From: Azolla caroliniana
Taxonomy: Eukaryota; Plantae; Polypodiophyta
Assembly: GCA_043228905.1 (NCBI GenBank)
Contig: JBHGNT010000013.1
Location: 3,596,001 to 3,660,000, forward strand
DNA: 64,000 nucleotides
Reading direction: 5' to 3'
Numbering within the stretch: the stretch's first letter is position 1; every line of letters begins with the position of its first letter. Below the pieces are notes generated by a model. That model searched no databases. It had not been told where the DNA came from and worked only from the letters and a program-made list of their open reading frames with translations. Made by a program: the position numbers and the translations under genes. This document shows, in pieces, positions 5,960 through 64,000 of the stretch.

Positions 5960-6022
5960 ATTCATAGTCTAATGGTAAGAGTTGGACCCATGTAGCATAA
6001 GGTCATGGGTTCGAGTCTTGCC
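5960..6022 (+). promoter_or_regulatory. tRNA-derived A/B-box module at the U3 edge of the C LTR (also 6490-6545, 11678-11729 and, on the minus strand, 43478-43537)
   Basis: TAGTCTAATGGTAAGA and GGTTCGAGTC at tRNA-like spacing. Confidence 0.65.
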
Positions 6023-6569
6023 ATATCATGACACTATCTCCCCCTTAAAGACGACGAGTGGAACAAGTCAGCGCTAATTGCGGACCGGGTTTGTCCGGAT
6101 AATATCCCGGTTGATGTCAGGAATAGTACTAAATAGAGAAAGAATTAGTACTAGAGAAGAGAAGTACTATTAGTACTAAGAGGACGGGACTGCGTAAGAT
6201 TCTCGAGAGAGGAAGATAGAAGAGGAGAGAGAGAGAGATAACGAGAATGAGAGAGAGAGAAAGATGATGACAACAACTAATATATTATGTGAAAGATAAG
6301 TACAAGTGGCTAAAAGGCTTAAGACTGGCGTTGAACCAATTTGGTTCAAAACAATGCCTTGTGCCTCCCTTTATAGTGTTTTTAGGAATAATCCTGAAGC
6401 TTCTAGAATGTTTCAGAGAGATTTAGAATATACATCAATTTTCTATGATAAAGCATAAATGAAAATAATATCCTACGTATTACAATTCATAGTCTAATGG
6501 TAAGAGTTGGACCCATGTAGCATAAGGTCATGGGTTCGAGTCTTGCCATATCATGACACTATCTCCCCC

Positions 6570-9500
6570 TTAAAGACGACGAGTGGAACAAGTCAGCGCT
6601 AATTGCGGACCGGGTTTGTCCGGATACTTTCGGTAGAAATCAGCAAGAAGATCTTGTGCATTGGCAACATGCTCGACGGGTTCCCAAGTACTTTCACTCG
6701 GACTATAACCGAGCCAATCGACCAAGTAATAAAGTTTGTTGCGAATAAGTTTGGAATCGAGGATGGTAGCAACTTCATACTTCGGGCCGGCGTCCAACTC
6801 CAGCGGGGGCGGCGGTGGTGTCACACAATCGGGAATGGTGTTTGCTTTATAAGGTTCAAGAAGAGAACAATGGAAAACCGGATGTATCTGAAGCTGCGGA
6901 GGGAGATCAAGGCGGAATGTGACATCATTAATCTTACCCGTAATACGGAAGGGACCGAGTCGTCGATAATCCAACTTGTCGCACGGTCGAGTAGTCTTGA
7001 TGTGACGACGTAAGAGCCATACTCGATCTCCGATGGCAAATGAGGAGGGAATCCGATGACGATCCGCATAAGTCTTCTGTGTGTGTTGAGCATGACGAAG
7101 GTGAGTAGAGAGATCCATCTGGAACTTGCGTAGCCTCTCCAAATGATCCTCGGCACGAGGGTTGGTAGGTAGCTCCAGGGTGTCGATCACCGACCAGCAA
7201 GGATGGAAACCGGTATAAACGAAAAATGGGGAGACCCGAGTCGAGGAGTGAATAGCATTATTATACGCAAACTCCGCAAAGTGGAGAATCTCGGCCCAAT
7301 CGTCCTATTGATAACTCAGGAAACACTGGAGATATTGCTCCAGCGTTTGGTTTGTTCGTTCCGCCTGCCCGTCGGTCTCAGGATGGTAGCCGGAGGAGAG
7401 TTTGCAGGAGACCTTGAGCATCTTGAAGAGATGCTGCCAAATTTTGGAGACAAATTCCGGTCCTCGATCACTGATAATACTGTCTGGGAGGCCATGATGC
7501 CGAAATACCTCACGCATAACGAGAGCGGCGGTTTCCTCGCTAGTGATGGCTTTAGTACATGGCACAAAATGTGCCATCTTCGTATATCGATCGACGACGG
7601 TTAGGATAGCATCGAACCCCTTCGAGACCGGCAGATCTGTGGTAAGGGTTCCAACAAGCCATATGGATGGTGTCGTGGCATCTTTGCTCGGCAGCAAGCA
7701 TCACAGGTCCGAACGTAGTCGTCGACAAAACGGCGCATGTGGGGCCACCAAAAAGATCGCTGCACTAGCTCCAACATCTTAGTACTACCGAAATGTCCCG
7801 CTGTATGGGTGTCGTGACAATGTTGGACGATTTGAAGGCGACAGGAGCAATCGGGGACATATGCGCGCTTTTTAAAGAATAACAAACCATCATGATATTC
7901 GAATTGTCGGTAGTCAATACCTGGTTGTTGAGACCAAGAACAGGATGCCCGAGAAGTATCAATGTGCGCCAGGATGTCTTGAGCAAAACTATCCGTCTTC
8001 AAGGTTGCACATATGTCATCGGTAATCCGTGAATCCATCGGGGTGTGAAAAATCCGCGTCGTGTGCAATCGTCTTGGTCCCAAGATTACTTGCTTTTGAT
8101 TATCAAATGTTGCGTCACCAGGACGAGGTGCAAGATATGAACGCCGTGATAGTGCATCTGCTTTTCCTTGCTGCTTCCCCGGTCGATATGTGATTTTGAA
8201 GTCGAAACGCGTGAGGAATTGCGCCCACCGAGCTTGCCGTCGATTTAGTACGCGAGCGTTCTGAAAATAAGCAAGATTTTTATGATCGCTAAAGACAATG
8301 ACCTGATGTGGAGAGCCCTCTAAGAAATGCCGCCATTGTACAAATGAATCCACGATGGCTAATAACTCCTTGTCATGTATTTCGTAGTTGATTTCTGCGA
8401 CATCGAATTTGCGCGAATGGGAAGCCACCGGATGCAACTCTCCTTTATCTCCTTGTTGAGAAAGGATGCTACCAAGGGCGAAATTTGATGCGTCGGCCTC
8501 CATGATGAATGGTTTGCTTGTATCCACATGAGCTAGAATCGGTGCTGATGTAAAGGCTTTCTTAAGATGCCGAAAAGCCATATTTGCTTCTATGGACCAA
8601 AGAAATGATTGGCCCTTCTTCGTAAGTTGTGTGAGAGGTAAAATAATCTTCGAGTAATCCTGTATAAACTTACGGTAGAAGTTAGCAAAACCTAGAAAAC
8701 ATTGTACATCTCGTACCGACTGTGGAATTTGCCACTCTAGTACAGTTTGGATTTTAGCTGGATCCATGGCGATGCCCTTTGAGGAGATGACGTAGCCTAG
8801 AAATTCCACTTGCTTGCAGTCAAAGCTACATTTTTCTAGCTTGGCATAAAGACCATTCTCGCGGAGTCGCTTTAGTACTAATAGTACATGAGAATCGTGC
8901 TCTTCCTGGGTCTTCGAATAAATCAATAGATCATCCAGATAAATGATCAAACAGATATCCAAGAGGTCTCTGAATATATCATTTGCCATGTGTTGGAAGA
9001 CTGCGGGTGCATTGGTTAGGCCAAACGGCATAACAGTATACTCGAAATGCCCATACCGCGTGCGAAAGGCGGTCTTCCACTCATCTCCTGGTCGGATCCG
9101 CACGAGGTTATACGCTCCTCGTAGGTCGATTTTAGTAAAAAACTTGGCACGGTCATTAACTCGCTCTAAAAGACTTGATATAAGAGGAAGTGCATACCTA
9201 TTCCGGATGGTGACTTTATTCAATCCGTGGTAATCAACGACAAGACTAAGTGAGCCATCTTTCTTCTTGACAAAGAAGATGGGTGCACCGTCCGGAGATT
9301 TCGAATGGCGGATGAACCCGCTTGCCAAGTTCTCCTCTATGTAGGCTCGAAGGACTTCTAACTCGGTGGGTGACAAGTTGTAAATTGGTCCCCATGGTGG
9401 CTCGATTCCTGGTTGTAAATCGATGGGACAGTCATAGGGACGGTGATGAGGAAGGGTACCGGCTTTTACCTTGTCAAATACATCGGCATAAGGATGATAT

Positions 9501-10105
9501 TTTGCTGGAAGTTGTACTGAGGAGTCCTTCTTAATAGTGCTGGAAGGATGTACTAATATTGCAAATAGGAACATTGCCTCCTTGGGTCCTTCTTCGCGTA
9601 GTTGATGGAGTGAAATGGTCGAAACTTGGTGAGTTGATTCTTGGGGTGGTCGATATCGGACTTCTCTTGTTCTCCAATCTATGGCTGGATTATGTAATTC
9701 AAACCAAGGTAATCCTAGGACAATGGGATGCTCTGGACTACTAATTATATTAAATGATATTACACACACAAAACTACCTTGGACAACTTGAATGGGTTCT
9801 GATTCTTCTACAATATTCCCGGAAGCAATGGGACGACCATCAATGACTACTACAGATGCGGGACAAGGAAGTTTTCTTAAGGATATCTGAGAAGCTTGGG
9901 CAAAATTTCAATCCATGAAACAGGAATTAGCTCCGGAATCTAAAAGTGCTAGGACGGGTACTGGGGGAGTACTTTTAGTACTAACAATGACTTGGGCTAG
10001 GAACACATTGCTAACTTGCTTGGAAGGAATGGAACCACTAATGGGCTGTACAGATCTAGGGCTGTTGTCCAACCAAACGGCTCCTATTTTGGCTGGACTC
10101 AATCG
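6570..10105 (-). pseudogene. pol: Element C pol (PR-RT-RH-INT-chromodomain), frameshifted
   Basis: LLDSGANSCF; YLDDLLIYS; ADASNFALG; SDRGPEF; chromodomain YEVATILDS..YLVDWLGYSPSESTWEP. Confidence 0.92.
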
Positions 10106-11256
10106 TTTAACTCTTCATCTAATTGACTAAGGATTTCAAATTTATTTGAGATACTTGGGCTATTAGTACTATGAATACTATCAAACACTCTATTAGTACT
10201 ATTAATACTATTAGACACTCCTAAGGGAAGAATTGACTCGGGTTTAGTACAAGCTACAATTTGATTTACCTACCTTCTTGGCCTATGGGGACAATTGATT
10301 GCAATATGCCCTGGTCCACCGCAATAAAGACATAATCGATTTGCATGTCGTCGTTGCTTTTCTTCTTCCGATAACGGGTCGTGTCGACGCATGGTATCGA
10401 TCTCCATCGGTGTCGAAGTATTTGCTTGAGGTATGTCTCGTGCAAACGGTTTGGCCGCGACTGCGACGTAAGTGGGCTCCGGCCTAGCGCGTGGTATCTG
10501 TAATTGACGTTCCGAACGCCGTTCGAAAAGGTGGTTGTCAAATCGGACCGCTCGACTGATTGCCTCTGTAAGAGACTTTGGTTCTTCGAGGAAGGTTAGA
10601 AGTAGATCTTTGACATCATTTCGCAGGCCATAGCGAAACTGCTCCATTAGTGCTTGATCATCCCAGGGTATGTCGGAAGCGAGTAGGCGGAAATCCGCCG
10701 CGTAGGCAGAGGCTGGACGATCGCCTTGACGCAATCGCCGGATCTTGTTGATCGCCGTCCTGATGCTGTCGGTGTCTCCAAAGCAGGCTTTGAACTCACT
10801 AATAAAATCTTCAAAGTTATTAAGCAAGGGCGAATGTTTTTCTAGAAGCGGAGCGAACCATGCTAAGGCTGAGCCGCTAAGCAACGTGCCTATTAAGCTG
10901 ACTCGGGATGCATCAATGGGGTATCGGGAAGGATGCATTTGGAGGACTAATCGTACCTGATTAAGGAATCCCCTGAATTGCGATCGCGTTCCATCAAATT
11001 TCACAGGAAGTTCAATCTTCGGCTCTTTATGAAATCCTTGGGGACTTGATCCTTGTTGTTGCAATGCCGCTTCGAGTTGTTGCACCCATAACGCTAACTC
11101 CCCATGCTGTTGTTGCGTTTGTTGCTTTTCTAGAGCGATTTGTTGCAGATCCCCTATAAGCCGTTACTTTTCTTGTTCCAAGGCAACAAATTTTTCTTTT
11201 AAGCATTGTAGCTCGGAGAAAACGGATTGATATTCTTGGGCGCTAATAGTAGCCAT
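10100..11256 (-). pseudogene. gag: Element C gag with premature stops
   Basis: EPKIELPVKFDG..LRQGDRPASAY..CLYCGGPGHIAINC; ATG at 11256. Confidence 0.9.
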
Positions 11257-11729
11257 AGTATAGGGAAAAGGGTAGGAGGAGGCAAATTGGTTCAAACGGT
11301 CAGGAATAGTACTAAGTAGAGATAGAATTAGTACTAAAGAAGCGCAGTACTATTAGTACTAAGAGGACGGGATTGCGTAAGACTCCCGAGAGAGAGAAAG
11401 AGAGAGAGAAGCGAAAAGAGAGATAGCGAGGATAAGAGAGAGAGAGAGAGATGATGATAACAACCAATATATTATGTGAAGGATAAGTACAAAATGGCTA
11501 AGAGGCTTAAGACTGGCGTTGAACCAATTTGGTTCAACATAATGCCTAGTGCCCTCTTTTATAGTGTTCTCAGGAATAATCCTGAAGCTTCTAGAATGTT
11601 CCAGAGAGATCTGGAATATACATCAATTTTCTATGATAAAGCATAAATGAAAATAATATCCTACGTATTACAATTCATAGTCTAATGGTAAGAGCTCGAC
11701 CCATGTAGCATAAGGTCATGGGTTCGAGT

Positions 11730-14700: not shown

Positions 14701-16095
14701 CATTACTTCCTCGGAATCGAAGTGATCTGTACCCCCGAAGGCATATTGATTAGCCAACGACATTACGTGCTGAGTATGCTTTTCAAATTCAGGATGGCCG
14801 ACTGTAAGTCCGTCTCGACTCCTCTGGACAAAACCGTCAAGCTTCGTCACGATACGGGAAAGGTATGCGACCCGACGAGGTTCCGACAAATTGTCAGAAG
14901 CCTCATATACTTGACCATCACCCGACCCGACCTCAGTTATCCGGTCGGAGTGATCAATCAGTTCATGGCGTGACCTACCGAGGAGCACCTTCAGTGTGCG
15001 CAACGCATACTTCGGTATGTCAACGGCACTAAGGACCGGGGACTTCTATATCGGACCGGTGCAGCCGCACAGTTAGTCAGCTACACTGATGTTGATTGGG
15101 CTGGCAACGCCGCCGATCGCCGATCCACGTCCGGATACGCGTTCTCCCTCGGGAGTGCCGCGATCGCGTGGAGCAGTAAGAAGCAGCCGACAATTGCACT
15201 GTCGAGCACCGAAGCTGAGTACCGAGGAGCGGTTGTCGCGACATGCGAAGCCATATGGTTGAAGCGGCTACTTAAGGACCTGCAAGAGGAGGTGTCAGAT
15301 CCAACGACGATCTACTGCGACAACCTCAGCAACATCCAGCTTGCGAAAAACCCTGTTTTCCACGCACGGACCAAGCACATTGAGGTGCACTACCATTTCG
15401 TCCGTGAGCGTGTCCTTTCCGGTGAAGTCGAACTTCAGTACGTTCTGACGGATCGGCAGACTGCCGACATCTTCACCAAGCCTCTTGGTCTGGACAAGTT
15501 GCGGCAATTCTCAGGTGCGCTCGGATTGCGTGACCTCGACGTGCCAAACTTGAGGTGGAGAACAGTCCTGAACGACCAAGCAAGGCAGCAGGAAAGGAGC
15601 AGAGACCGCGACACCGAGTCGGTTGACTCGATTGTCAAGTTCGACTTCGGATCGGCTGAAGAAGCCGAGGGCGGACCCGCGGAAAAGTCCGGAACCGGAC
15701 AGAAGGGGAGCAGCCGAAGGAGAGAGCCGAAGCCAACCACGCATGGGGAAGATGACACCATCGAGGGCGAGAAGACCGAAGACAAGTTGGAGACAGCCAA
15801 CTCGGACGAGAGCGAAAACCGATCGGAGGTAGCTGAGTCGGTTCGGATGTTTGATTTAGATACGCTGAATCAACCAAGGCCCAAGCGGAAGAAAAGGCAG
15901 CAGGAGAAGCGTCAACACCGCAACAGCAGAAGAGCTGATAAGGGCCACATGAGAAGACAAGCCGATCGGAAGGGTCGAAGCGCGCGGAGTCGAACAGGTC
16001 GAGGAGCGCGAGTGAGGCGTGAAGCCAGGAGGAACCGGAGCTGTGAGCCTGAAGATCCCGAAGAGCCTCAAGTTGAGCTTGAGGGGGAGTGTTGA
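11730..16095 (+). pseudogene. pol: Element D gag C-terminus and pol (PR-INT-RT-RH) with charged 3' extension
   Basis: WYVDSGASNHM; FIDDYTRHTW; YKARLVAKGY; LYVDDL; HARTKHIEVHYHF; several stops. Confidence 0.92.
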
Positions 16096-16544
16096 GAGAC
16101 AAGCTCAACATCGGCCGAATCGGCTGAAGAAGCCGAGGACCGGATCGGTTGGGACCGATCGGTTAGGCCGAATGCGTAAACCGGTACGCAGACCGGTGCA
16201 TAGGTAGGGCCGAATAGGTGCATAAACCGGGAGGCCGTTAGGAAAGATATTCCGTGAGGAATATATTTGGGAGTTAGTGTAGGATCTCTTAATGAGCATT
16301 GAAGTGCTGTCAGTACTTCTGTCAGTCCTTCTAGGACTTGTATAAAAGTGTTCATTGAACACACATATGTATAGAGTGTGGTGAATAGAGATTGAGTATT
16401 TTTTTGAATATAGTCCTTGTGTTTTCTCTCTCACTCTCTCTGTCTCTCCTGCGTATACTGCGTAAGCTCAAACTCTCCATTAAACCTGAGTTTTTCTTCC
16501 TTCTGTTCGGTCTTCATACTTGCTTCCGCACGCTACTTTTTACA

Positions 16545-21106: not shown

Positions 21107-21164
21107 TGTCACGAAAACACTCACATCATGCATTGAAAGGATCATGATACTCATATTATGCCTC

Positions 21165-21225
21165 AAAAGGATTTGAACCCACGACCTTGTTGTACACATG
21201 TCAAATCCTTAGCCATTGTATTAAT
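21165..21225 (-). promoter_or_regulatory. tRNA-derived A/B-box module in the B LTR (also 4165-4225)
   Basis: Minus strand TAATACAATGGCTAAGG and AAGGTCGTGGGTTCAAATCC; the A box is degenerate. Confidence 0.55.
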
Positions 21226-21553
21226 ATTTTTGTATGTATAGTTTTTAGAATATGAAATCTAATATCATAGGAATATTCTATTTTACTCTACATTCTAGAA
21301 TGACCTAGAATATTCTAGAATGTTCTATACACTAGAACCTTCTAGAATACTCTAGAGATCTTCTAGATTACTCTACATTCTAGGATAACCTAGAATATTT
21401 TAGAATGTTCTCTATTACTTATAAATTGGGATCTACCACTCATCCCAAACCTAAATTGGTTCAACACCATTTTGTAGTACTCTGTTGCCTACTCTATCCA
21501 TTTACTCTTCAATATAATAATTCTTTTTCAATTATCTCTCTATCTTCTTTCTT

Positions 21554-21603
<50 letters not shown>

Positions 21604-21607
21604 GACA

Positions 21608-24090: not shown

Positions 24091-24096
24091 ACCTCG

Positions 24097-27179: not shown

Positions 27180-27266
27180 CTTGCGCGCTCTTGGTGTACG
27201 TCACCTTGACATCCCAACTCTCTAAACTCTTCACCACACCACGTACGCCGTGAAATCTTCTCACTC

Positions 27267-29913: not shown

Positions 29914-29914
29914 A

Positions 29915-32893: not shown

Positions 32894-32924
<31 letters not shown>

Positions 32925-43300: not shown

Positions 43301-43465
43301 AATAGAAAATCATTACAAAAAACCAGCTTTGATCCTTTAACATCAAGTCTTTTTAGAGCAAAAAGGACTTCAAGTCCTTTTTGGCTCATATGTCCTAATC
43401 TCTTATGCCAAAGCTCTAAACGAGAATCAAATTCAGCACTAGCAAGAAACTTTCCAAGTACAAAG
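40399..43465 (-). mobile_element. Element G: degenerate Ty1/Copia (INT-RT-RH and 3' LTR), cut by E
   Basis: 3' LTR 40399-40615; PPT AAGTGGGAGGT; FHSRTKHIDV, QMDVNTSFLHG and LWHKRLGHMS motifs. Confidence 0.88.
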
Positions 43466-43773
43466 TGTCATGATATGGCAAGACTCGAACCCATGACCTT
43501 ATGTTACATGGGTCAAGATCTTGACCATTAGACTATATGTTGTAATACAAAAAATATTATTTTCATCTAGGTTTTACTATAGAAAATTGATGTATATTCC
43601 AGATTTCTCTGGAACATTCTAGAAACTTCCGGAGTACTCCTGAGAACACTATAAAAGGAGGCACAAGGCATTATTTCGAACCAAATCAGTTCAACGCTAG
43701 TCTTAAGCCTCCTAGATACTATTGTATATTCCCTTAACATAATATATATCTTTTGTTATCCTGACTCACTCAC

Positions 43774-43815
<42 letters not shown>

Positions 43816-46800: not shown

Positions 46801-47977
46801 CTATGAAATTCATGATAAGGAGCTATTACCAATAGTGGACTCCTTTACGCAATGGAGGCATTTTCCAAAGGGGTCTTCTCATCAAGTCATCGTATTTAGT
46901 GATCACAAAAACCTTGCCTACTTTCAGAATGCTCGTGTGTTAAATCGACGTCAAGGTCGGTGGGCCCAATTCCTCACTCGTTTCGACTTCAAAATTACAT
47001 ATCGTCCAGGGAAGCAACAAGGGAAGGCAGATGCATTATCACGACTTTTGTATCTAGCACCGCACCCCTAGTGAGCCGGCTTTCGATAACCAAAAGCAAG
47101 TAATCTTGGAACCAACACAACTGCAAGCAACGCAGGTTTTCGGTATGCCCTTGGATTCCCACGTTATGGATACCATACGTGAGGACTTGAAGACAGATGT
47201 TTTCGCTCAAGCCATTCTAGCACAAATTAATCCCTCTCGAGCATCTTGTTCACAGTCGTAACAACCAGGTACGGACTATTGGCAATTCAAAGCAAGCCAT
47301 GCCAATCTATTGCCCTAGATTTCATCACAGATCTTCCGGTCTCTAAGGGATTCGATGCGATCTTAATAGTAGTAGATCGATATACGAAGATGACCCATTT
47401 CCTGCCATGTACTAAGGAAATCTCCAATGAAGAAACCGCTGAAATTGTCATGCGTGAAGTATCATCAGCGACCGTGGACCCTAGTTCGTCTCGAAGTCCA
47501 GGAAGCACCTCTTTAAAATGCTTAAGGTCACTTGTAGCCTCTCCTCCGGCTACCACCCACAAATAGACGGCCAAGCAGAACAAACAAATCAAACGCTGGA
47601 GCAGTATCTTCGGTGCTTTTTAACCTATCATCAAGATGACTAGGTGGATATTCTCCACTTTGCCGAATTTGAGTATAATAACGTTGTCCACTCATCGACA
47701 AAGGTGACACCATTTTTTGCTTACACGGGCTATCACCCCCGGTGGTGTGTATTTGAAACCCCAGAGTTTACCTACAAATCCTTGTGTAGAGGATTGTTTG
47801 GAGCAGCTATGTAAGGTACAAGCGGATTTATCTACTCATCTACAACAAGCTCAACAAACACACAAGGTTTACGTGGATTTTCATCGGCTTCCATCCAGTT
47901 TTGACATTCGAGATCGGGTGTGGCTACTACGACGACACATCAAGACTACTCGCCCATGCGAGAAGTTGGATTACCGG
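43466..47977 (+). mobile_element. Element E: Tcn1-like chromovirus (C family), cut by T in the integrase
   Basis: 5' LTR 43466-43900 homologous to the C LTRs; gag from 43998; PR, RT, RH and INT with many stops. Confidence 0.92.
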
Positions 47978-49471
47978 TGTCGTGGTGTGGCGTGTGTAGT
48001 GTGAGAAAAAGCGAAGCTTCACGCACATCTCATAAAGTATTATATGAATGAAAATATAATAAGAATAAAGTTGTAGTAGCTTAGTGGTTAGGGCTTATAA
48101 GTATACATGGGGAGGTGTAGAGTTCGAGTCTCTCCTGTGATGAATTAAGAAGTATTTTGCTCCTATTCCATTTTTGTGGTAAAGGAAAAAAAAAGCATGT
48201 AATGTTAAAATAGGCGCATCTTTCCTCTATAAGAGGGGAGGAATACGGCTTATTCTGGGGTCGCCCATTTTGCTTTAGGGGTGTACCACTAGGTTTTCAT
48301 CTTCTTCTTGGGTTAGGGTTTTGTAGTCTCCCTTTCTCCTCCTTTTTTTCTAGGGTTAGGGTTTGAGAGGTTCTACTTTTCTTCTTTTCTCCTTAACATA
48401 TTAGAGGACATATGATTTTAGGGTTTGTGAGTTTTGCTCCTATTCTACTTCTTACTCAAGATTTTAGGGTTTGGATTTCTTAAACCATGGCTTTTTCGGC
48501 ATCTTCGTGGTGGTGAACTCAGTGGACAAAAAGCGGAAGGGGGTTGTAGTGGCACGAGGGCTACTTCGAATCGAGGCAACATAGCCGTCGGAAGGAGTCG
48601 AGCTCGGAGCCCACTAGACTCGCCTTCGCTAGATTATTTTAGCCTTTGATTACTTCATAATTGATTGTTGTAAAAACCACCTAATTCGTGGTGTCAAGCC
48701 TATAAATTCTAAAGAATACAAAAACCCCTTTTAATTCATAGTTGTTTTTCTTAATCATGAAACTAATTCTATGTTAGAAAGAAAACCACCAAAATCGTGG
48801 TATTAAACTAATTATTGTTTAAACCGTATTTTATATACAAATTTATGTATATGTTCCCCATGTCATTGACATCATAAGCTCCCACTTCCTCACTAGTTTT
48901 GTCTCCCCAGTCCAAGGCCCTGGTGGTCCCGTTCGAACAACACACGCAAGCGAAACATAGCGACATTGGTGAAATGACGTAAAAGAGCGGTAGGGGAGGA
49001 CAAAGACAGACGAAGAAGATTTCATGGAGATGATGTTGAAGACGATGGTGGATTCACGCGGGCAAGGCGCAATGAAGGAAAAGAAAAGAAAAGTTGACAA
49101 CCTTTTGCCCCACCACATCACTTTTTTTGGCACATGCTGGAGGATGTGCCGTTTGGTGGGGATGGATGTCGTGGTGTGGCGTGTGTAGTGTGACAAAAAG
49201 TGAAGCTTCACGCACATCTCATAAAGTAATATATGAATGAAAATATAATAATAAGAATAAAGTTGTAGTAGCTTAGTGGTTAGGGCTTATAAGTATACAT
49301 GAGGAGGTGTAGAATTCGAGTCTCTCTTGTGATGAATTGAGTATTTTCTTCCCGTTTCATTTTTGTGGTAAAGGAAAAAAAAAGCATGTAATGTTAAAAT
49401 AGGCGCCTCTTTCCTTTATAAGAGGGGAGGAATAAGGGTTATTATGGGGTCACCCATTTTTCCTTAGGGAT
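47978..49471 (+). mobile_element. Element T: non-autonomous LTR element (988-bp LTR, ~200-bp internal region); second LTR cut by F
   Basis: LTR 47978-48965 (TGTCG..CGACA); degenerate Trp PBS at 48967; PPT ending 49166; LTR repeat from 49167. Confidence 0.85.
48071..48140 (+). promoter_or_regulatory. tRNA-derived Pol III A/B-box module in LTR T
   Basis: TAGCTTAGTGGTTAGGGC and AGAG-TTCGAGT-CTCT. Confidence 0.7.
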
Positions 49472-54985: not shown

Positions 54986-55900
54986 CCGCGCGAATCCACC
55001 ATCGTCTTTGATATCATCTCCATGAAATCTTCTTCGTCTGTCTTTGTCCTCCCCTACCGCTCTTTCACGTTGGGTTCACCAATGTCACTATGTTTCGCTT
55101 GCGTGTGTCGTTCGAATGGGACTGCTGGGGCCTTGGACCGGGGAGACAAAAGCGGTGAGGAAGTGGGAGCATATGACGTCAATGACATGGGGGACATATA
55201 CGTAAATATTTATATAAAATAGGGTTTAAACAACAATTAGTTTCGGGTTTTCTTTCTTACAAAGAATTAGTTTCATGATTAAGAAAAAAAACTATGCATC
55301 AAAAGGGGTTTTTGTTTTCTTTAGAATTTATAGACTTGACACCACAAATAGGTGGTTTTTGTCTAGTGGGCTCTGAGCTCAACTACTTGCGACGGCTATG
55401 TTGCCTCGATTCGAAGTAGCCCTCGTGCCACTACAACCTCCCTTCTGCTTTTTGGCCACTCAGTTGACCACTACCGAGATGCCGAAAAAGCCCATTGTTT
55501 AGGAAATCCAAACCCTAAATCTCGAGTAAGAAGTATAATAGGAGCAAAACTCACAAACCCTAAATTCATATTTCCTCTAATATGTTCAGGAGGAAAGAAG
55601 AAATGTAGAACCTCTCAAACCCTAACACTAGAAAAAAAAGGAGGAGAAAGGGAGGCTACAAAACCCTAACCCAAGAAGAAGATGAGAAGATGAAAACCTA
55701 GTGGTACACCCCTAAGACAAAATGGGTGACCCCATAATAAGCCCTATTCCTGCCTTCTTATAGAGGAAAGAGGCGCCTATTTTAACATTACATGCTTTTT
55801 TTTTTTCTTTACGACAAAAATGGAACGGGAGCAAAATACTCCTTAATTCATCACACGAGAGACTCGAACTCTACACCTCCCCATGTATACTTATAAGCCC
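54986..55900 (-). mobile_element. Inverted, truncated copy of element T
   Basis: Reverse complement of ~48090-49061 with indels; PBS TGGTGAACCCAACGTGA at 55065-55081; LTR end at 55083. Confidence 0.9.
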
Positions 55901-56077
55901 CCACGAGAGATGAACAATTGGGGGTAACGAGATGGGGAAGTTGATGAGATAGGGAGATTGAGAAGTTCATGACAATGAGTAAAAATATCTATTCCATGAC
56001 TGGTGTTGATCTCCTTGATGTTAACAAGGGAGATCAACCCTTTTTATACATGTAGTGATGCATGATAAGCATGCTCA

Positions 56078-56210
56078 TGCCAAGTCTTACATACTATAAT
56101 ATCAAGCATACTAATTCTTGCATGCCAAGTCTTACATACTCACTCTTACATATTGAGTCTTACATATTGGTTCTTACATACTGAGTCTTACATACTAGGT
56201 CTTACATACC
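56078..56210. repeat. GTCTTACATACT short tandem array, probably in an LTR fragment
   Basis: About 6 copies of (G)TCTTACATA; minus-strand TATAAAAAG at ~56040. Confidence 0.6.
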
Positions 56211-58179
56211 ACTCTTTATACAAAGGTTTGAAGTCTAAATTTTGTCTAGGAAGAATATATATACAAGGGCCTGTTGGGAGACAAGTCCCTCCGGATGGGA
56301 AGGGAGAAGAACAGTGCTGATAAGCAAACTCGGCCGAGGCCGAAACCAGATGAGGAGTACCCGGCTACGGAGAGCCGGATGGTGCAGACCCAGTGAAGAC
56401 CGGATGAGGAGTACCCAGCTACGGAGAGCCGGATGGTGCAGACCCGGTGAAGACTGGATGAGGAGTACCCGGTTACGGAGAGCCGGATGGTGCAGACCCG
56501 GTGAGGAATGCTCACCGGATGAAGAGACATATTCGTAAATATGTTTTTGAGAGTCCATCGAGGCTATATTTGTAAATAGCCGAAAAGTCATATTAGTATA
56601 AATATGACTTAGGGCAAACTTTTAGATCACTGTTGTTGTTGTTGTCATTTTCTTGTTGGTGCAAGGAGATAGAGCGCGTAACTGTGTACAGAGAGAGAGA
56701 GAAAGAAAGAGGTCGTTGCCTCTGTTGTAACCGCCGCCTGTGGCGAAGATCGTGAGCGTGAGGTCGTTGCCTCCGTGAGCTCACTGTTTGTACATTCGTG
56801 ACATAGTGATAGTTAGCAAGCAGTGGACTGCTGTGGTTTTTTTCCCTCTCAGGGTTTTCCACGTTAAACATCCTGCGTACTCTTCTCTCCATTGGTTCGT
56901 GCATTTTATTTCCCGTTTTCTGTGTATGATTCTAAGCTCGGTTGTGGCCGAGCGTTGCGCATAAAGAGTGTTTTAGTTCCCGTCAAGTGGTATCAGAGCA
57001 AAACAACACAAAAAATGGACGAATCATTTGGCGGCATGTTCAAGCTCACCGGCTCCAACTATTCGGTAAGGAAATCGAAGATGAGGGACATGCTCGTGGT
57101 TAAAGATCTTTGTTTGCCGGTTCAGTTTGGGGACAAGAGACCGGACAAAATCGACGCCACGATATGGGAGGTGATGCACATGAAGACAACGGCTTACATA
57201 CGGTGCTTCATTGACATGAGCCTATACAACAACTTCAATGAAGAGAGCAAGGCTCATGAGCTCTGGGAGAAGATCGGCATAATGTTTCAAAACAAAAATG
57301 CCGTTAATCAGGTTTCAGTATTCCGGAAGCTAGTAAGACTCCGGTACCAAGATGGCTCCAACATGGCGGAGCACATGAATGCCTTCCAGGGGCTGATACA
57401 CCAAGCAACATCATTGGAAGTACCTCTCGCCAACGAGGTACTAGCACTACTCCTGCTCGGTTCCCTCCCGGATAGCTGGGAGACGTTGGTCGTCACTTTG
57501 GGCAACGCCGGGCCTGAAGGAAAACGGCTATCCCTAGCAAGAGTAAAGTCGAGCTTGCTAGATGAGGAGGCGCGTCGGAAAGATAAAGATACGAGCTCCG
57601 ACTCCAAAGCGCTACTTACCGAATCGGAACGTGGAAGACATAGGAACCGTAGCCCCCAGAACCGGGAAAAGTCGGGGACATGGTCAAAGTCAAGGGGGAG
57701 GTGTTAAGAGTCTATTACTAATCAATAGACCAAATCAAGTAAAAAGGAAGAAAATAGATTGGATAGAAGAACCCGTTCCACCCGACCACCCCCGAGCTAT
57801 GATCTAGACATAGCCAACCTACCACCGACGTCCCATACCGCCGGATATTAGGATGACTAATACCTTGGAAGAGATAAACACGATCGTCGAGACGAAAGCC
57901 TAGCCCGCACCACCGGTGTCTACGACAGCAGCCTTCCGACGTGATTCCTATGAGGGTAGCTAAGCCTCATATTTATACCTTTTCCTAGGCCCCTTGAATA
58001 GATGTGCCTTTCTAAAAGGCTCTCTATTCATTGGTTGTCTAAATCATGATAGTGCATGCACATATCATTCATTCTTTCCAATCATTAGTCCCCTTTTTAA
58101 TAATAGTGAACATACCCTTCACTAATGTAAATATTAGTGACCTACCCTCACCAACGTTATGTGTACATAACATACTCCC

Positions 58180-58980
58180 CTACTTCAAAAGATTGCACTC
58201 TTGCAATATAAAGTGAGGAAATTGTGCCTTAAGCGAATGCTCGCGTTCCCATGTGGCATCATCAATAGGTTTATCCATCCATTTGATCTTGAATAGCCGA
58301 ATCTCTTTAGAACGTAAACGTTTAGTACGAGAATCAAGAATTCGTTCAGGAACATGAGGTTTGTAAGAAAAATCCTCTAATGTTACAAGATCTTGGATTG
58401 TGATGGTGTTATCACCAGAGCCTAAAAATGGTTTTAGACGACTGACGTGAAAAACAGGATGAATACCAACGTTACGAGGTAAGGCAAGGTGATAAGCAGA
58501 TGACCCAACTCGCTTAAGGATTTCAAATGGGCCACAATATCGTGGGGCTAACTTAGCGCACTTGCCCGTAGATAATGACGTAGAATCAGTCGGGACACGC
58601 AAAAAAACTTTTTGACCAATAGTAAATGCACGAGGACGTCTATCCTGATCAGCATAAAATCGAGCACGATCTTGAGCTGTCTTGACATTTTCTTTGGCAA
58701 TATGCAACATTTGGTTCATGTCTTGCAAAAAATTGCGTGTACTGTCTAATGTATCACGATGAATCGTGACATCAACTGGGGCACGTGGCTGAAAACCATA
58801 CATCAACATAAAAGGACTATATCCAGTGGATGTATGTTTAGAGTTATTATAGGCAAATTCTAAGATAGGAAGGTATTGCTCCCACTTAGAAGGGGTTTTT
58901 GCTACATAAGCTCGAAGCATGTCCTCAATAATTTGATTAACTCGTTCAGTTTGTCCATCAGACTGAGGATGATCTGCGGA
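58180..58980 (-). pseudogene. Element I integrase C-terminal half with chromodomain
   Basis: HPQSDGQTER; EFAYNNS; KLAPRYCGPF; HPVFHVS; PERILD..KW..DATWE. Confidence 0.9.
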
Positions 58981-59794
58981 ACATAGCTAAGATGTATTTC
59001 TCGGATCTCTATCTTGAGTAATCATGGCGGCTCCCCGAGGCTCAACCATGGTTCTTACATCAATGAAATTTCCTAGATAGCCTTATATTAATGCCAACCC
59101 ATCATGTATTATATGGTCGAGAAAGTGTATTACGTGAAAAAACAAGTGCACTCACAAGTAATATTCTAGTCTTGCGAGCAATAAGCAAACGTGATGATAA
59201 AATGATAAAATAAGGCACTACTCATAAGAGTTAAGTAGTGACGAAAACAAGGGTAAAAAAAAAGAAAAAGAACCCATGTGTTACCTACGAAAAAAAAAAA
59301 CAATGTCACAAATAAATGGGAAGTGCAAGGTATGCACATATACATCCCAATATGATTGTTATAACTTGCACAATTGTGACATAAGCCACAAATTGATACA
59401 AGTGATGATGGTGTTGTGCGCAAAGATGTAATACTCAAATCCATGAGTAAAACATCAATAAGGGAACTCATATGGTTTTACTCGTTTTCTAAGGCTTGAT
59501 GATAAGAGTTAAACCTAGATGACCCGTTGAAAAAAAAATCGTTCAACAAGCCACTCCATACGAAAAAAATAGTCTACACGTAAAGGTTACATTAAAAATA
59601 AACGATGTAAATACTTTATACATGAAAAGGAAGTGGAAAAAGGAGAGTTAATTGTGGGCGGGTAAATAATAATTACTAGAAAATCATATAAGTGAAACAA
59701 TACTTATGAAATTAAAATTTAATTAGAATAATCAACAATTAGGTGTATGGAATCAAACATGCCCTAAGATACGAAACCCTAGGGTAGTTGACAT

Positions 59795-60110
59795 GCACCT
59801 CCTCAAGACCACCACATATCCCTAGAATCGGCCAAGTAATGGCTAATTAAAGAGGAAAGTGGCATAGGTAAGTGACATATACCTCGTCAAGGCCACATCA
59901 TCCCTTAGAATCGGCCAATTGATGGCTAATTAAAAAGGAAAGTGGCATATGTAAGCTACATATACCTTGTCAAGGCCACAACATCCCATAGAATCGGCCA
60001 ATTGATGGCTTAATAGAGAGTAGAGTGGCATAGGTAGGCAACATACACCTCGTCAAGGCCACATCATCCCTTAGAATCGGCCAAGTGATGGCTCAATAGA
60101 GGGGAAGAGT
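59795..60110. repeat. Four ~84-bp tandem repeats in the leader of element I
   Basis: TAGAATCGGCCAA..ATGGCT..AGTGGCATA..CAAGGCCAC repeated. Confidence 0.88.
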
Positions 60111-61646
60111 GGTATACTCAACATCATATGCAAAACGGCCATGAGATAAGCGTGTGCGATTAGAGCAAACACGCTCGACCCAATGCACAAGAATAATTAT
60201 TATCGTAAGAGTTCAAGAGAGGAGAGAGTGGGATATATATCGCAATATCCAAAAGGCCATGAGTTGAGCGTGTGCGATTAGTGCAAACACGCTCGGCCCG
60301 ATGCATAATAATAAGTAAAATCGTAGCGTAGTAGGAGGTAGAAAGAAAGAGAATAAAACGTAATACCAATTTGATTCGACCATAAAGAACGCATAATAGA
60401 AAAAGAGAAGAGATCAAAAAAGAAGAATACCGGGTTTAGAGTGTTGTTTTGATCCTGAGAAGAGCATGACGAACCTTGTTAGATCCCCCTCGCTCACACG
60501 CAAAAAACATCAAAACAACAAAAAAATTGTTAGTAAAAGCTCTGATACCACTGTTAAGAGTCTATTACTAATCAATAGACCAAATCAAGTAAAAACGAAG
60601 AAAATAGATTGGATAGAAGAACCCGTTCCACCCGACCACCCCCGAGCTATGATCTAGACATAGCCAACCTACCACCGACGTCGCATACCGCCGGATATTA
60701 GGATGACTAATACCTTGGAAGAGATAAACACGATCGTCGAGACGAAAGCCTAGCCCGCACCACCGGTGTCTACGACAGCAGCCTTCCGACGTGATTCCTA
60801 TGAGGGTAGCTAAGCCTCATATTTATACCTTTTCCTAGGCCCCTTGAATAGATGTGCCTTTCTAAAAGGCTCTCTATTCATTGGTTGTCTAAATCATGAT
60901 AGTGCATGCACATATCATTCATTCTATCCAATCATTAGTCCCCTTTTTAATAATAGTGAACATACCCTTCACTAATGTAAATATTAGTGACCTACCCTCA
61001 CCAACGTTATGTGTACATAACAGGAGGCCTACTTGCTTCTATTGCGGCAAGCCGGGACACTTCCAGAAGAACTGTCGGCATTTCCGGAAAGACAAGGAAA
61101 CCGACGGTACCGATTCGAAGCGGACACCGGACCGGAACGGTAAAGACCGGAAGAGGACGACGGCAATTGTGGCAAGTGAAGAAGAGTTGATGCTCATCAC
61201 CGAGGAAAGTGAGATAAACCTTGCCGGCGACGGGATGACCTAGGTGGTAGACTCCTGAGCGTCGTTCCACCTTACCCCGGACCGGAAATGCTTCTCATCC
61301 TACTCAGCCGGTGATCACGGCTGTGTCCGGATGGGGAATGAAGGTACATGCCGAATTGTCGGCATAGGAGACGTGTGGCTGACAACACCAACCGGATGCA
61401 AGTTCATGTTGAAGGATGTCTGACACGTTCCGGAGGTTCGTTTGAACCTGATATCAGCCGGTCGGCTAGATGATGAAGGCTACACGAGTAGCATCCGGAA
61501 CGGTGTCATGAAGTTTAGCAAAGGGAGCCTGATTGTGGCTCGGGCCCGGAAGGTCAACACACTGTACCTGATGAATGCCCGGTTATGTCCAGAAGAAGTG
61601 AACGTGGCATCCGACACTACCGGTGAGCTGTGGCACAAGAGGCTAT

Positions 61647-62229
61647 GTCATATGAGCGAGAAGGGGATGAAGAGGCTTGCAGACGACAACCTCATTCTAG
61701 TGAAGAACGTGCACTTGGAGAAGTGCACTGATTGTCTGGCCGGTAAGCAAAACCGGACCTCCTTCTGACCAAGGCCACCGATAAGACGTAATGCACCACT
61801 GGAGTTGGTGCATACGGATGTGTGTCAAGTAGACACCAAGTCCCATGCCGGAGCGCTGTACTTCGTGACGTTCATAGATGACCACAGCCGGAAGCTATGG
61901 GTCACACCGTTGAAGATGAAGGATCAGGTGTTATCCGTCATATGAGCGAGAAGGGGATGAAGAGGCTTGCAGACGACAACCTCATTCCAGTGAAGAACGT
62001 GCACTTGGAGAAGTGCACTGATTGTCTGGCTGGTAAGCAAAACCGGACCTCCTTCTGACCAAGGCCACTGATAAGACGTAATGCACCACTGGAGTTGGTG
62101 CATACAGATGTGTGTCAAGTAGACACGAAGTCACATGCCGGAGCGCAGTACTTCGTGACGTTCATAGATGACCACAGCCGGAAGCTGTGGGCCGCACCGT
62201 TGAAGACGAAGGATCAGGTGTTATCCGTC
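61647..62229 (+). repeat. ~290-bp tandem duplication in H integrase N-terminus
   Basis: GTCATATGAGCGAG...GGATCAGGTGTTATCCGTC occurs twice. Confidence 0.92.
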
Positions 62230-62877
62230 TTCAAAGAGCTCCACGCGAGAGTGGAAAGAGAAACCGGCCGGAAGCTGAAGGCGGTTCGAGCAGATAACGG
62301 AGGAGAATACCGGGGCCAGTTCGAGGAGTACTGCCGCTCGAAGGGGATCCGGCTCGAATTTAACATGCCGAAGACGCCGGAACTAAACGGACTGGCCGAG
62401 AGGATGAACCGGACCATAATGGAGAGGGTCCGGAGTATGCTAGCGCATGCAAAACTACCCAAGAAGTTTTGGGCTGAGGCATTGTCGACGACGACATATG
62501 TTGTGATAAATAGATCACCCTCAGTACCCTTGGACGGAGACACGCCACAGAGAGTATGGACCGGTAAGGAAGTATCTTACCGGCATTTGAAGGTGTTCGG
62601 GTGTCTCGCGTACGTGCATGTAGCTAAGGACCGGCAAGGAAAGTTAGATCCAAAGACCCGGCCATGCATATTCCTCGGTTACGGTGACGATGAGTTTGGC
62701 TACCGAGTGTGGGACCCAGTCGACAAGAAGCTATTCCAGAGTTGAGATATTATCTTCATGGAGGACAAGACGCTCGCCGACTGGGAGTCGGAGAAGAAGA
62801 TAATGAGCTCCGAGTCGACTGGTAAGGATAGACTCTACAATGAACAGACCCAACCGGCAAGAGACCGGTTAGCACGC

Positions 62878-64000
62878 TGTCGTGAAGATTTTCGGCAATA
62901 GTGTGAAAATCCTATAAAACGTACAAAATCGAGTATAAATCACATAATACAATAATTGTGAAGATAACATTTTTAATAAATTTAATATCTAAGTACAAAA
63001 TGATGGAGGTTTCAAATGCACTTTATTACACGAGAAACGGACAACTAAATGTCAAGATATGAGGGTATAAAGTTTGTGAAAGGAAAAGAGAAAATTGTGA
63101 GATATCCCACATAGGCACGACAAATACGGCTCTCATCATATATAAGGTGGAGCAAAAGATATTATCTTTGTGTCTATGTGTGGAGCATAGAGAGTTCAAG
63201 GTAACTTGAACTAAGAGTAGAGGTGGGCTAGCTACTCGTAAAGGGTTTTGGCCAACTAAAACCGGACCGGTGATGGAGCCGGTGATCCGGCGGCAATCCG
63301 GTGACGGTGAGACACCGGCATCTGACAGCAATTCGGCGACGACACCGGTAACCGACGGCATCCGGCGAGGCACCGATAACCGACGGCGGCACCGGTATCC
63401 GGCAACGGCATCCGACGACATCCGACTAACCGGCGTCCGGCGACTAGATAAATAAATATATAAATATATATACATATACAAGGAGGGCAAAGAAGGATTC
63501 GAACCTTGCACCTCCAAGCTAGGAATCAACTGGCTTACCATTAAGCCATGCTATTTAGTTCAATTTTTATTTCTATCATTATACTTTTACATGTAAATTC
63601 TCATACATGAGAGCTAAAATGAGTGACATGGTTATCATGCACCACATGTAATACATAAGTGCCAAATGGCAAACATGCAATTTATGCATGTCTTGTACCC
63701 TCACATGCATCATATGCATGAGAGCATCTATAAAAGAAGGAAGGGGGAGGAGAAAAAACACGGTTTTTTTATGAAAATTAAGAGGAAGAAATTCATTATG
63801 AAATTGATCGTGTAACTTGTTTCTTAAATCTAAAGTTAAAAGTTCAATCAATCTCTCTCAATCGTGTAATCTCAACTTCTCTCTTTCCCAATCTATCTTA
63901 AGTAGTTTCTCGCTAAAGCTTGCGCCAAAGCTTGTACCGACTTTGAATCCTTCCGGTCCAGAACCCCGACGGTTCCGCCTCACGATCCGCACGTAGTGAC
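62878..64000 (+). mobile_element. Element J: LTR of the TGTCGTG..TAGTGACA type
   Basis: Starts TGTCGTG, interrupting H; the window ends at ..GTAGTGAC, like the T LTR end; shares GAACCTTGCACCTCCAAG with the LTR at 145. Confidence 0.7.
63489..63555 (-). promoter_or_regulatory. tRNA-derived Pol III A/B-box module in LTR J
   Basis: TGGCTTAATGGTAAGC (A box, paired D stem) and GGTTCGAATCC (consensus B box, T stem). Confidence 0.75.

Follow-up and report, generated by a model that had tools for sequence, protein, structure and literature searches.

Several Ty3/gypsy retrotransposons in 64,000 nucleotides of Azolla caroliniana DNA (GCA_043228905.1, JBHGNT010000013.1, 3,596,001 to 3,660,000, forward strand; this whole stretch is called the window) carry in their LTRs a module of an A box and a B box, 32-33 nt apart. 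Our results support the module as an inherited, integral part of the LTR, and the sequence pattern suggests that the elements recruit the Pol III machinery for their own benefit.

Detection of the modules

The window was scanned for TRGYNNANNGG followed after 31-34 nt by GGTTCRANNCC, with up to 2 mismatches over both boxes, which gave 10 matches in the 64 kb against 0.66 expected (100 dinucleotide shuffles, maximum 3). Eight of the 10 were B1, B2, C1, C2, C3, E, T1, and J, and the other two, at 7608 and 11042 in the coding region of element C, look like chance matches. T2 was recovered at 3 mismatches, and the L145 module gave no match at up to 3 mismatches. Profile R1 was trained on 26 non-redundant relatives, with E outside the training set, and its top 11 matches in the window were the 11 LTR sites proposed in the initial annotation, all of which are present at their coordinates. 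Nine of the 11 were significant, whereas L145 (B-box half only) and the truncated T3 were not significant alone. The six chromovirus copies scored 52-64 bits (E reached 63 bits although the profile was not trained on it) and T1 scored 27 bits (E = 2e-7). The elements and modules are as follows (bits from profile R1 unless stated; mismatches given as A box + B box).

145..727 (+), L145, LTR of the large Ty3/gypsy element "A"; start TGTCGTGATG after a G-rich tract, PBS-like TGGTGGTCCCG at about 728; RVT_1, RNase H, and protease domains downstream
277..336 (-), L145 module, antisense; good B box, degenerate A box; aligns with J; 7.1 bits, E = 0.33
4107..4375 (+), element B 5' LTR, Ty3/gypsy chromovirus; start TGTCATGA; internal duplicate of its first ~35 nt
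4169..4223 (-), B1 module, A to B box, antisense to B; 1+1 mismatches, gap 33, 57 bits
5583..6033 (-), element C (chromovirus) 3' LTR, outer copy, in tandem with the inner copy; a repeat of the last ~66 nt of pol plus PPT lies between the two
5965..6018 (+), C1 module, antisense to C; 0+1 mismatches, gap 32, 62 bits; its B box ends ~15 nt from the outer end of the LTR
6115..6558 (-), element C 3' LTR, inner copy (TG...CA), directly after PPT AAGGGGGAGA and the stop codon of the chromodomain ORF; SH3_Tf2-1 and Chromo domains (Pfam) in the ORF region 6570-7190(-)
6490..6543 (+), C2 module, antisense to C; 0+1 mismatches, 62 bits
11299..11729 (-), element C 5' LTR; outer ~20 nt gone at the junction with the host copia element X
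11678..11729 (+), C3 module; truncation cuts the B box; 0+2 mismatches, 52 bits
21107..21375 (+), element B 3' LTR, polypurine tract GAAAGGGGATAG directly before it; 93% identity within the LTR pair; RVT_1 and protease domains (Pfam) in the internal ORFs of B
21169..21223 (-), B2 module, antisense to B; 1+0 mismatches, gap 33, 64 bits
43465..43900 (+), element E 5' LTR; E is related to C (~80% nucleotide identity)
43481..43535 (-), E module, antisense to E, 16 nt from the LTR start; 0+1 mismatches, gap 33, 63 bits
47978..48921 (+), element T 5' LTR, probably full; PBS-like TGGTGGTCCCG next, at about 48922; LTR start, PPT region, and leader of T colinear with L145
48077..48131 (+), T1 module, sense to T; 0+2 mismatches, 27 bits, 23 bits with the Rfam tRNA model; first T4 run ~25 nt past the B box
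49167..49469 (+), element T 3' LTR, cut at 49469 by the LTR of copia element X2 (Met PBS of X2 at 49893)
49269..49323 (+), T2 module, sense to T; 0+3 mismatches, 19 bits, E = 7e-5
55856..55900 (-), T3 partial module in an inverted truncated T copy; B-box half only, A box missing; 7.0 bits, E = 0.37
63495..63548 (-), J module, antisense, in a + strand LTR related to and colinear with L145, ~240 nt upstream of the LTR TATA box; 0+0 mismatches, gap 32, 16 bits, E = 4e-4

As claimed initially, both LTRs of a pair carry the module (both B LTRs, three of three C LTR copies, and both T repeats), and the LTRs of the four Met-primed elements (PBS 5163, 49893, 56988, 60539) have no box match. The initial annotation gave no orientation: relative to the element, the module of T is sense and those of C, E, B, J, and L145 are antisense.

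Position and inheritance in two gypsy lineages

C, E, and B are chromodomain Ty3/gypsy elements (integrase C-termini of B and C 53% identical). Their module faces out of the element, in antisense, and is set 4-60 nt in from the outer edge of the LTR. It was found in the same place in about 50 related loci from public assemblies, probably of the same fern or a close relative of it. In 64 LTR starts taken from public assemblies and the window, no best antisense A+B match had more than 3 mismatches in 52, and the spacing was 32-33 nt in all but one although 29-37 nt was permitted; in the controls (sense strand, reversed sequence, and 1280 shuffles) 2 or fewer mismatches never occurred and 3 or fewer occurred in 0.8%. 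In an IQ-TREE phylogeny of the integrase-chromodomain region the module-bearing elements form one clade (support 98/86), and the outgroups on the tree (moss-type, Ceratodon, and others) are without the module. One clade member, L036, has seemingly lost it, and the boxes are decayed in individual copies (L011, L043, L032, L062). No SINE body, tail, or target-site duplication was found at the modules, nor any presence/absence pattern among close relatives; fixed across the clade, they behave as inherited LTR sequence and not as SINE insertions, as first proposed.

A second gypsy lineage comprises J and L145, whose modules are antisense, and their non-autonomous relative T, whose module is sense. 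The claim of several families holds for at least two Ty3/gypsy lineages. The opposite orientation in T and the lack of a module in L084, a gag relative of L145, count against reading the module as a Pol III recruitment site.

Selective conservation and limited tRNA likeness

Conservation was measured in 26 representatives that share less than 85% identity and are phylogenetically related. The A box (1.14 bits per column), the B box (1.38), and the variable-loop motif AGGTC (1.56) are well conserved, and the anticodon arm (0.47), the acceptor (0.37 and 0.56), and the flanks (0.45-0.71) poorly. The initial annotation had proposed comparing boxes and stems with the flanks: both boxes and their spacing proved far better conserved than the surroundings, but the stems are unconserved, as is the sequence between the boxes. 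Position 59 of the B box, an N in the consensus, varies freely. The spacer from module to LTR end varies from 4 to 60 nt, whereas the box spacing is fixed, and boxes and spacing are kept between families with only 47-60% identity in the integrase C-terminus and with otherwise unalignable LTRs. Two features count against the recruitment-site reading, namely that A-box position G10 is unconserved and that the variable-loop motif, which is no classical promoter element, is the best-conserved block of all. A T4 run occurs within 40 nt past the B box in 14 of the 26 representatives (5.7 expected) and none is near the module in the remaining 12, C itself among them; this enrichment is soft, because five of the 14 runs are the mere complement of the A-run of the polypurine tract and because the representatives are related.

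The initial annotation saw no good acceptor stem, and indeed ARAGORN found no tRNA (J was reported at the 90% threshold only) and the Rfam tRNA model gave none at its gathering score (best site T1, 23 bits against 29), leaving J unreported even in a 251-nt search. That annotation had itself named background covariance-model scores as a point against its idea, and the module scores do lie near background, against 46-68 bits for true tRNA genes in the same loci. Cloverleaf cells were 48% paired against 46.5% in shuffles, and no cloverleaf is present. The tRNA likeness does not extend beyond boxes, variable loop, and spacing.

A candidate Pol III recruitment site and its alternatives

We give an about even chance to the reading that the module is a DNA-level TFIIIC/Pol III recruitment site serving as a short outward transcription unit, a chromatin boundary, or both. 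The module would descend from a tRNA gene or a tRNA-derived retro-copy and persist as a relic incorporated into the LTR U3, with a single gain in the chromodomain clade (C, E, B, and relatives) and probably a separate capture in the lineage of L145, J, and T. Since the gain, selection would have kept only the parts of a type-2 Pol III promoter, namely A box, B box, and 32-33 nt spacing; a point against this reading is that so strict a spacing exceeds the needs of a promoter alone, because TFIIIC tolerates variable distances between the boxes. We infer factor binding, transcription, and benefit to the element as follows. The module would act as DNA by binding TFIIIC, which would bring in TFIIIB and Pol III; one consequence would be a short outward transcript of about 75-115 nt, and the other a TFIIIC-dependent chromatin boundary at each element end. 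Such a boundary may shield the LTR Pol II promoter, 100-250 nt further in, and would take effect after chromodomain-guided insertion into silent chromatin. There are precedents for both parts of this reading: tDNAs and TFIIIC sites are known barriers to heterochromatin (PMC2040200, PMC3395662), and Helenus LTRs have kept promoter boxes of tRNA origin (PMC10886601).

RNA-level docking of a tRNA, whose D arm and T arm would pair with the antisense box segments of U3 during reverse transcription or packaging, is unlikely. In its favour, the primer tRNA of yeast Ty3 uses its T and D arms to base-pair with U3 sequences at the 3' end of the genome (PMC5371799), five of the six families have the module antisense in U3, and the blocks that are conserved coincide precisely with the D-loop and T-loop regions. 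However, the chromovirus clade has no PBS that matches the 3' end of a tRNA and bears the signature of Tf1-type self-priming: a stretch of 12-13 nt, 32-33 nt after the TATA box, is matched by an exact complement immediately beyond the LTR. C shows this, as do 12 of the 30 module-clade loci with enough downstream DNA for the comparison (0 matches with reversed uncomplemented copies). Moreover, conservation tracks the promoter consensus, with position 59 free and no contiguous pairing stretch, docking would not need the fixed spacing of 32-33 nt, and the module of T is sense.

Quite unlikely is a passive relic without function, left in the LTRs by an old tRNA or SINE insertion. The absent cloverleaf, the near-background covariance scores, the decayed boxes, the apparent loss in L036, and the module-free gag relative of L145 agree with it, but boxes and spacing persist across diverged families while the spacer beside them differs by tens of bases, and neither SINE hallmarks nor presence/absence differences among close relatives are seen. 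It is likewise quite improbable that the boxes are kept as binding sites for Pol II transcription factors or for proteins of the element itself, the likeness to a tRNA promoter being purely historical. The module does lie 100-250 nt upstream of the LTR TATA box, which is enhancer territory, and its orientation differs between T and L145/J as for an enhancer-like element; yet two blocks fit the A- and B-box consensus at canonical tRNA spacing in two lineages, which is hard to account for without Pol III factors, the readers of exactly that arrangement. Transcription of the element's own template RNA from the module, as in Cassandra or Helenus, is very improbable: T is non-autonomous with a sense module and Helenus TRIMs are known, one in Selaginella (PMC10886601), but in C, E, B, J, and L145 the module points outward and therefore cannot drive the element's own RNA, these are coding elements of at least 5 kb with many T runs, and T has a T4 run ~25 nt past the B box and an LTR of about 0.9 kb, well above TRIM size.

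Comparison with known systems

tRNA-derived SINEs inserted in LTRs share with the modules a tRNA-like head, A and B boxes, and degenerate stems, whereas the modules lack body, tail, target-site duplication, and insertion polymorphism and occupy a fixed LTR position across the whole clade. Cassandra TRIMs are non-autonomous elements under 1 kb with a 5S rRNA-derived (type 1) Pol III promoter in their LTRs, in sense orientation and with a conserved terminator, and their Pol III transcription has been demonstrated. As in Cassandra, a small-RNA-gene promoter is long conserved in both LTRs of a plant LTR retrotransposon; the analogy drawn initially is inexact, however, as the modules are tRNA-derived, mostly antisense, outward in five of six families, and hosted by protein-coding elements of at least 5 kb that are not miniature.

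The bipartite primer-binding site of Ty3 likewise involves antisense U3 copies of tRNA D-arm and T-arm regions (tRNAiMet in Ty3; PMC5371799), but a 5' PBS for that tRNA is present in Ty3 as well, whereas the chromovirus clade carries the self-priming signature and keeps full tRNA-length spacing and a promoter consensus instead of complementarity to one tRNA. Yeast tDNA and extra-TFIIIC (ETC) boundaries resemble the modules in candidate TFIIIC action without a useful RNA, and the border position would fit a barrier role (PMC2040200, PMC3395662); those boundaries are host loci, ETC sites often having a B box only, and the putative site here is carried at both ends of a mobile element.

The closest published case removes the novelty of a tRNA-based Cassandra analogue as such, since Helenus (TRIMp3; Kojima 2024) comprises miniature non-autonomous elements with tRNA-bearing LTRs (311-1263 bp, non-coding, with PBS and PPT, and including one family from a non-seed plant, Selaginella), in which A and B boxes are conserved, no credible tRNA is encoded any longer, and the element's own RNA is presumably transcribed from the promoter (PMC10886601). 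Shared with our elements are tRNA-derived sequence in both LTRs, conserved boxes, the lack of a credible tRNA, and the presence of PBS and PPT. Kojima expected autonomous partners to use Pol II promoters only (PMC10886601), whereas the hosts here are autonomous chromoviruses and a large gypsy element, with the module outward at the U3 edge in five of six families. Helenus having already been described, what our elements add is therefore a variant, and what is new here is a tRNA-promoter module in autonomous elements, facing outward.

LTR retrotransposons in the window

Self-comparison and domain scans showed that the window consists mostly of nested LTR retrotransposons, with the following features.

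145 (LTR start): element A, a large Ty3/gypsy element interrupted by B
4107-4375 and 21107-21375, plus strand: LTRs of element B, a gypsy chromovirus that hosts X
4722-5162 and 16092-16544: LTRs of element X, a copia element with a Met PBS at 5163, which hosts C
5583-11729, minus strand: element C, a gypsy chromovirus
33832-35496: EIN3-type gene (domain scan)
43465-47973, plus strand: element E, related to C at about 80% nucleotide identity
47978-49469: element T, a short non-autonomous element that is related to A and cut by the copia element X2
54986-55900: second copy of T, truncated and inverted
57702-61022, minus strand: short Met-primed gypsy remnant with 471-bp LTRs that are 99% identical
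around 63500: J, the 5' LTR of another A-like element

C has RVT_1, RT_RNaseH, Integrase_H2C2, SH3_Tf2-1 and Chromo domains (Pfam), which is the chromovirus order with a C-terminal chromodomain, and C, E and B code for gag, RT, RNase H, integrase and chromodomain. The LTR at 145 (L145) is part of a large gypsy element, and T is non-autonomous with an LTR of about 0.9 kb. In the remnant at 57702-61022 there is a perfect tRNA-iMet PBS at 60539-60550, and its integrase C-terminus shares 34% identity with that of C; neither a module nor boxes were present in its LTRs.

C ends in two tandem 3' LTR copies (window 5583-6626), between which the last ~66 nt of pol and the polypurine tract are repeated. 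The B LTR shows a tandem duplication of its initial ~35 nt (TGTCATGA...GAAAGGA; window 4107-4170), which adds about 50 nt to the distance between the module and the LTR end, and the related locus L029 has the same duplication. Tandem repeats within retrotransposon sequence were an 83-bp unit in at least three copies (59783-60116) and a 290-bp unit in two copies, 96% identical (61647-62229).

Detection and orientation of the modules

All 11 sites of the initial annotation were recovered in place, each with an A-box-like and a B-box-like block. The pattern scan of the window (at most 2 mismatches in total, gap 31-34 nt) gave 10 sites against 0.66 expected from dinucleotide shuffles, and 8 of the 10 were among these modules. 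Profile R1, trained on 26 non-redundant relatives, placed the 11 sites as its top 11 matches; nine were significant, while L145 (B-box half only) and the truncated T3, in the second T copy, were individually below significance. The boxes match those of a type-2 Pol III promoter, with a TRGCNNAGTGG-like A box and a GGTTCGANTCC-like B box in the same orientation.

On the coding strand of C, the end of the chromodomain ORF is followed by the polypurine tract and the LTR start TGTCATGA, and about 13 nt after TGTCATGA by a reverse-complement B box and then a reverse-complement A box. E has the same layout, and so has B after the 35-nt internal duplication of its LTR start; therefore, the module lies at the outer U3 edge in C, E and B and points out of the element. 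J and L145 also have an antisense module, about 190-240 nt upstream of the TATA box. The T module is sense-oriented, though the LTR start, PPT region and leader of T are colinear with those of L145, and a T4 run follows it after about 25 nt. In the L145 LTR a sense A-box-like GGGCCTAGTGG is located just upstream of the antisense module, and this region (window 243-300) forms a long imperfect palindrome around the T-loop, which may be the trace of an inversion separating L145 and J from T.

Conservation of the module among chromovirus relatives

Relatives were searched with an alignment of the integrase-chromodomain ORF of C and its homologues, and 80 loci were fetched from metagenome contigs, plus a few more by exact-protein look-up; this protein-based choice introduces no bias toward or against the module. 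In nearly all loci of one group of ENA assemblies the order 3' of the ORF was polypurine tract, TGTCATGA, a spacer of 4-60 nt, antisense B box and antisense A box. Among 64 LTR starts from the window and related loci, scored with A-B gaps of 29-37 allowed, an antisense A+B match was found in 43 with at most 2 mismatches and in 52 with at most 3, and the A-B spacing was 32-33 nt, within the range of tRNA genes, in all but one of these 52. The level of at most 2 mismatches was never reached in the 64 LTR starts by the sense strand, the reversed sequence or 1280 shuffles.

In the ML tree of the integrase-chromodomain protein region, all module-bearing elements formed one clade (support 98/86). 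Among members whose LTR start could be read, only two did not show the module at the shared LTR position: it is decayed in L043 and was apparently lost by deletion in L036. Distant chromovirus relatives, namely the Ceratodon locus L002, the moss-type Ga loci and L086-L088, had no module. The tree thus points to a single deep origin of the module within the chromovirus clade. Since the L029 family matches B about as closely as the two LTRs of B match each other, the ENA (ERZ) assemblies may come from the same species as the window or a close one, and the sampled loci document the depth of divergence between families and not the breadth across species.

Extra antisense A/B-box-like matches occur in the pol region of one family (L001:777-829, L013:5267-5319, L015:4958-5010 and L016:3231-3283, all on the minus strand), with a total compatible with chance. 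In distant relatives from other sources (L087:2019-2200, L088:1272-1400, L060, L064 and L080), what comes after the chromodomain ORF is not a recognisable LTR start but a short purine-rich stretch and then a new ATG-led ORF.

Conservation was calculated on 26 representatives with less than 85% mutual identity (alignment A4).

Information content in the module and its surroundings (bits per column, 26 representatives)
A box: 1.14
B box: 1.38
Variable-loop motif AGGTC: 1.56
Anticodon arm: 0.47
Acceptor strands: 0.37 and 0.56
Flanks: 0.45-0.71

Of the two kinds of conservation for which the initial annotation proposed a test, that of the boxes held, with values exceeding the flanks, and that of the stems did not (acceptor and anticodon arm). 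B-box position 59 is free in the consensus and equally free in the representatives, and G10 of the A box is not conserved. When a cloverleaf was imposed, its cells were 48% paired compared with 46.5% in shuffles (acceptor stem 36%, anticodon stem 39%). Because the boxes are high in information while cloverleaf pairing is about that of shuffles, the alignment indicates that selection preserved the two boxes and the distance between them and did not act on an RNA fold. The fixed spacing is not the mere result of a low indel rate, because the neighbouring spacer changed by tens of bases meanwhile. A T4 run was present within 40 nt after the B box in 14 of the 26 representatives (5.7 expected), but as a terminator signal this enrichment is only suggestive: the 26 sequences share ancestry, five of the runs are no more than the A-run of the PPT read on the opposite strand, and no T4 run occurs within 40 nt of the B box in C-type modules.

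The module is neither a tRNA gene nor a SINE

ARAGORN made no tRNA call for the modules in the window, which together with the low pairing of the acceptor stem agrees with the earlier remark that a good acceptor stem is lacking. The Rfam tRNA model (RF00005) was run on the window, 20 loci and a 251-nt stretch around J. No match in the window reached the gathering score of 29 bits, and the best module scores were 23.0 bits for T1, in the first T copy, and 21.4 bits for the module of the external locus L021, the only ones reported with E up to 10. The covariance-model check proposed in the initial annotation therefore went against a tRNA fold, with module scores near background. True tRNA genes in the fetched loci (Asp-GTC, Asn-GTT and Thr-AGT, at L021:128-201 and L041:552-627 and 831-906) scored 46-68 bits with the same model. 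These genes are 0.1-1.6 kb from 5'-truncated chromovirus copies, in 2 of about 85 short contigs, which may be coincidental or may hint at insertion near Pol III genes.

A tRNA gene with a cloverleaf is ruled out by the missing ARAGORN call, the near-background Rfam scores and the lack of cloverleaf covariation support. ARAGORN at a relaxed threshold gave mostly noise, including a false 'tRNA-Leu' in the box-less LTRs of the 57702-61022 element. A hairpin between GTCATG at the LTR start and CATGAC beside the B box was likewise rejected, as other families retain 4-5 of 6 pairs with no compensating changes. As first noted, there was no SINE tail and no clear target-site duplication around any module, and a SINE insertion is further contradicted by the fixed LTR position of the module in nearly all clade members.

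Priming of the module clade and the docking-site alternative

The main rival explanation is that the module could be a Ty3-like tRNA docking site in U3. The U3 region of yeast Ty3 base-pairs with both the T arm and the D arm of its primer tRNA (PMC5371799), and antisense D-loop and T-loop copies in U3 could do the same job as the Ty3 U3 segments. However, the bipartite PBS of Ty3 needs a 5' PBS for the same tRNA, and no tRNA-end PBS was found after the 5' LTRs of C, E and B, unlike L145 and T, which do have a tRNA-type PBS-like site. The module clade seemingly has no tRNA primer and shows a self-priming signature instead: a 13-nt stretch of C starting 32 nt after the TATA box is the exact complement of sequence 3 nt past the 5' LTR.

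11285-11300 and 11520-11535, minus strand: putative self-priming segments of C

A 12-mer 32-33 nt after the TATA box with its exact complement just past the LTR was found in 12 module-clade loci (L009, L012, L013, L015-L017, L019, L021, L024, L034, L035 and L044), and a control search with reversed uncomplemented copies gave 0 matches. The module clade thus looks like one with Tf1-type self-priming; a 2010 survey of Tcn1-like elements detected no PBS and no self-priming in the Selaginella member (PMC2864245). Moreover, conservation in the module tracks the promoter consensus and not a contiguous pairing stretch, and the T module is sense-oriented, both of which speak against docking. The lesser rivals considered were that the module is a passive relic, that it acts as a Pol II enhancer, and that it drives Cassandra-like self-transcription.

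Modules of the second lineage

A tRNA-type PBS-like site is common to J, L145 and T, whose shared LTR start is unlike that of the chromoviruses; L145 and T both carry the PBS-like TGGTGGTCCCG after their LTRs (window 728-745 and 48922-48940). With R1, J scored 16 bits and T2, in the other LTR of the first T copy, 19 bits, little above true tRNA genes (12-14), and T1 was clearly higher (27). These modules are tRNA-derived, and homology to the chromovirus module is not claimed because J and T2 barely exceed true tRNA genes; a separate capture in this lineage is likely. A gag-ORF search for relatives gave two matches, and the only locus with upstream DNA (L084) had an LTR without a module.

Possible function of the module

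The module is a real, conserved LTR feature, and a function for it is plausible. The chances appear evenly balanced that it is a DNA element read by TFIIIC, and hence by TFIIIB and Pol III, with two outcomes that would not exclude each other: a short outward transcript, and a boundary of the kind formed in yeasts by tDNAs and extra-TFIIIC sites (PMC2040200, PMC3395662). At the outer U3 edge, such a boundary would suit elements steered by their chromodomain into silent chromatin.

LTR retrotransposons are thought to depend on RNA polymerase II. To our knowledge, the Pol III promoters so far found in LTRs all belong to miniature non-coding elements (Cassandra, Helenus) and drive transcription of these elements themselves. 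We consider it rather doubtful, though conceivable, that an entire autonomous chromodomain clade has a Pol III/TFIIIC site of its own at each outer end, selected in its life cycle. In one version, the site would serve as a portable chromatin boundary, and the LTR promoter would thereby stay active once the element has inserted into heterochromatin. In a radical version, a short outward tRNA-like RNA would take part in replication or packaging, and such an RNA would be a perfect complement of the U3 copy that its own family's genomic RNA contains. If true, protein-coding elements bordered by a conserved outward Pol III promoter would put the tRNA transcription machinery to a different use, which could explain the continued expression of chromodomain-guided elements in silent chromatin, and a fern genome would be seeded with numerous TFIIIC sites that could shape chromatin domains.

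Comparison with known systems

The initial annotation had put forward a tRNA-based analogue of Cassandra. Such an analogue is already known, because Kojima (2024) described Helenus and grouped it with Cassandra and Ajax as TRIMp3 (PMC10886601). The same study reported that 'not a few' Repbase LTRs hold tRNA-like pieces and argued that autonomous partners must use Pol II promoters (PMC10886601). A full-text literature search for tRNA-like modules in chromoviruses, fern LTRs and autonomous elements returned nothing closer than Helenus. By description, the chromoviruses resemble Selaginella SM-Tcn1 in combining ~440-bp LTRs with a T/C-rich leader and in lacking a tRNA PBS (PMC2864245), which is only an indirect pointer to the Tcn1-like clade.

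As in Helenus (TRIMp3), tRNA-derived sequence is present in both LTRs. However, TRIMp3 are miniature non-autonomous elements of about 0.3-1.3 kb with no ORFs, which does not describe C, E, B or L145, and T, non-autonomous as well, is not miniature since its LTR alone is about 0.9 kb. Further, the Helenus promoter is presumed to transcribe the element, whereas in C, E, B, J and L145 the module runs antisense and points outward; only T has the Helenus orientation, but with the T4 run shortly after it. What is new here is therefore the autonomous hosts, the outward antisense placement at the U3 edge and, as the protein tree indicates, the single deep origin in the chromovirus clade.
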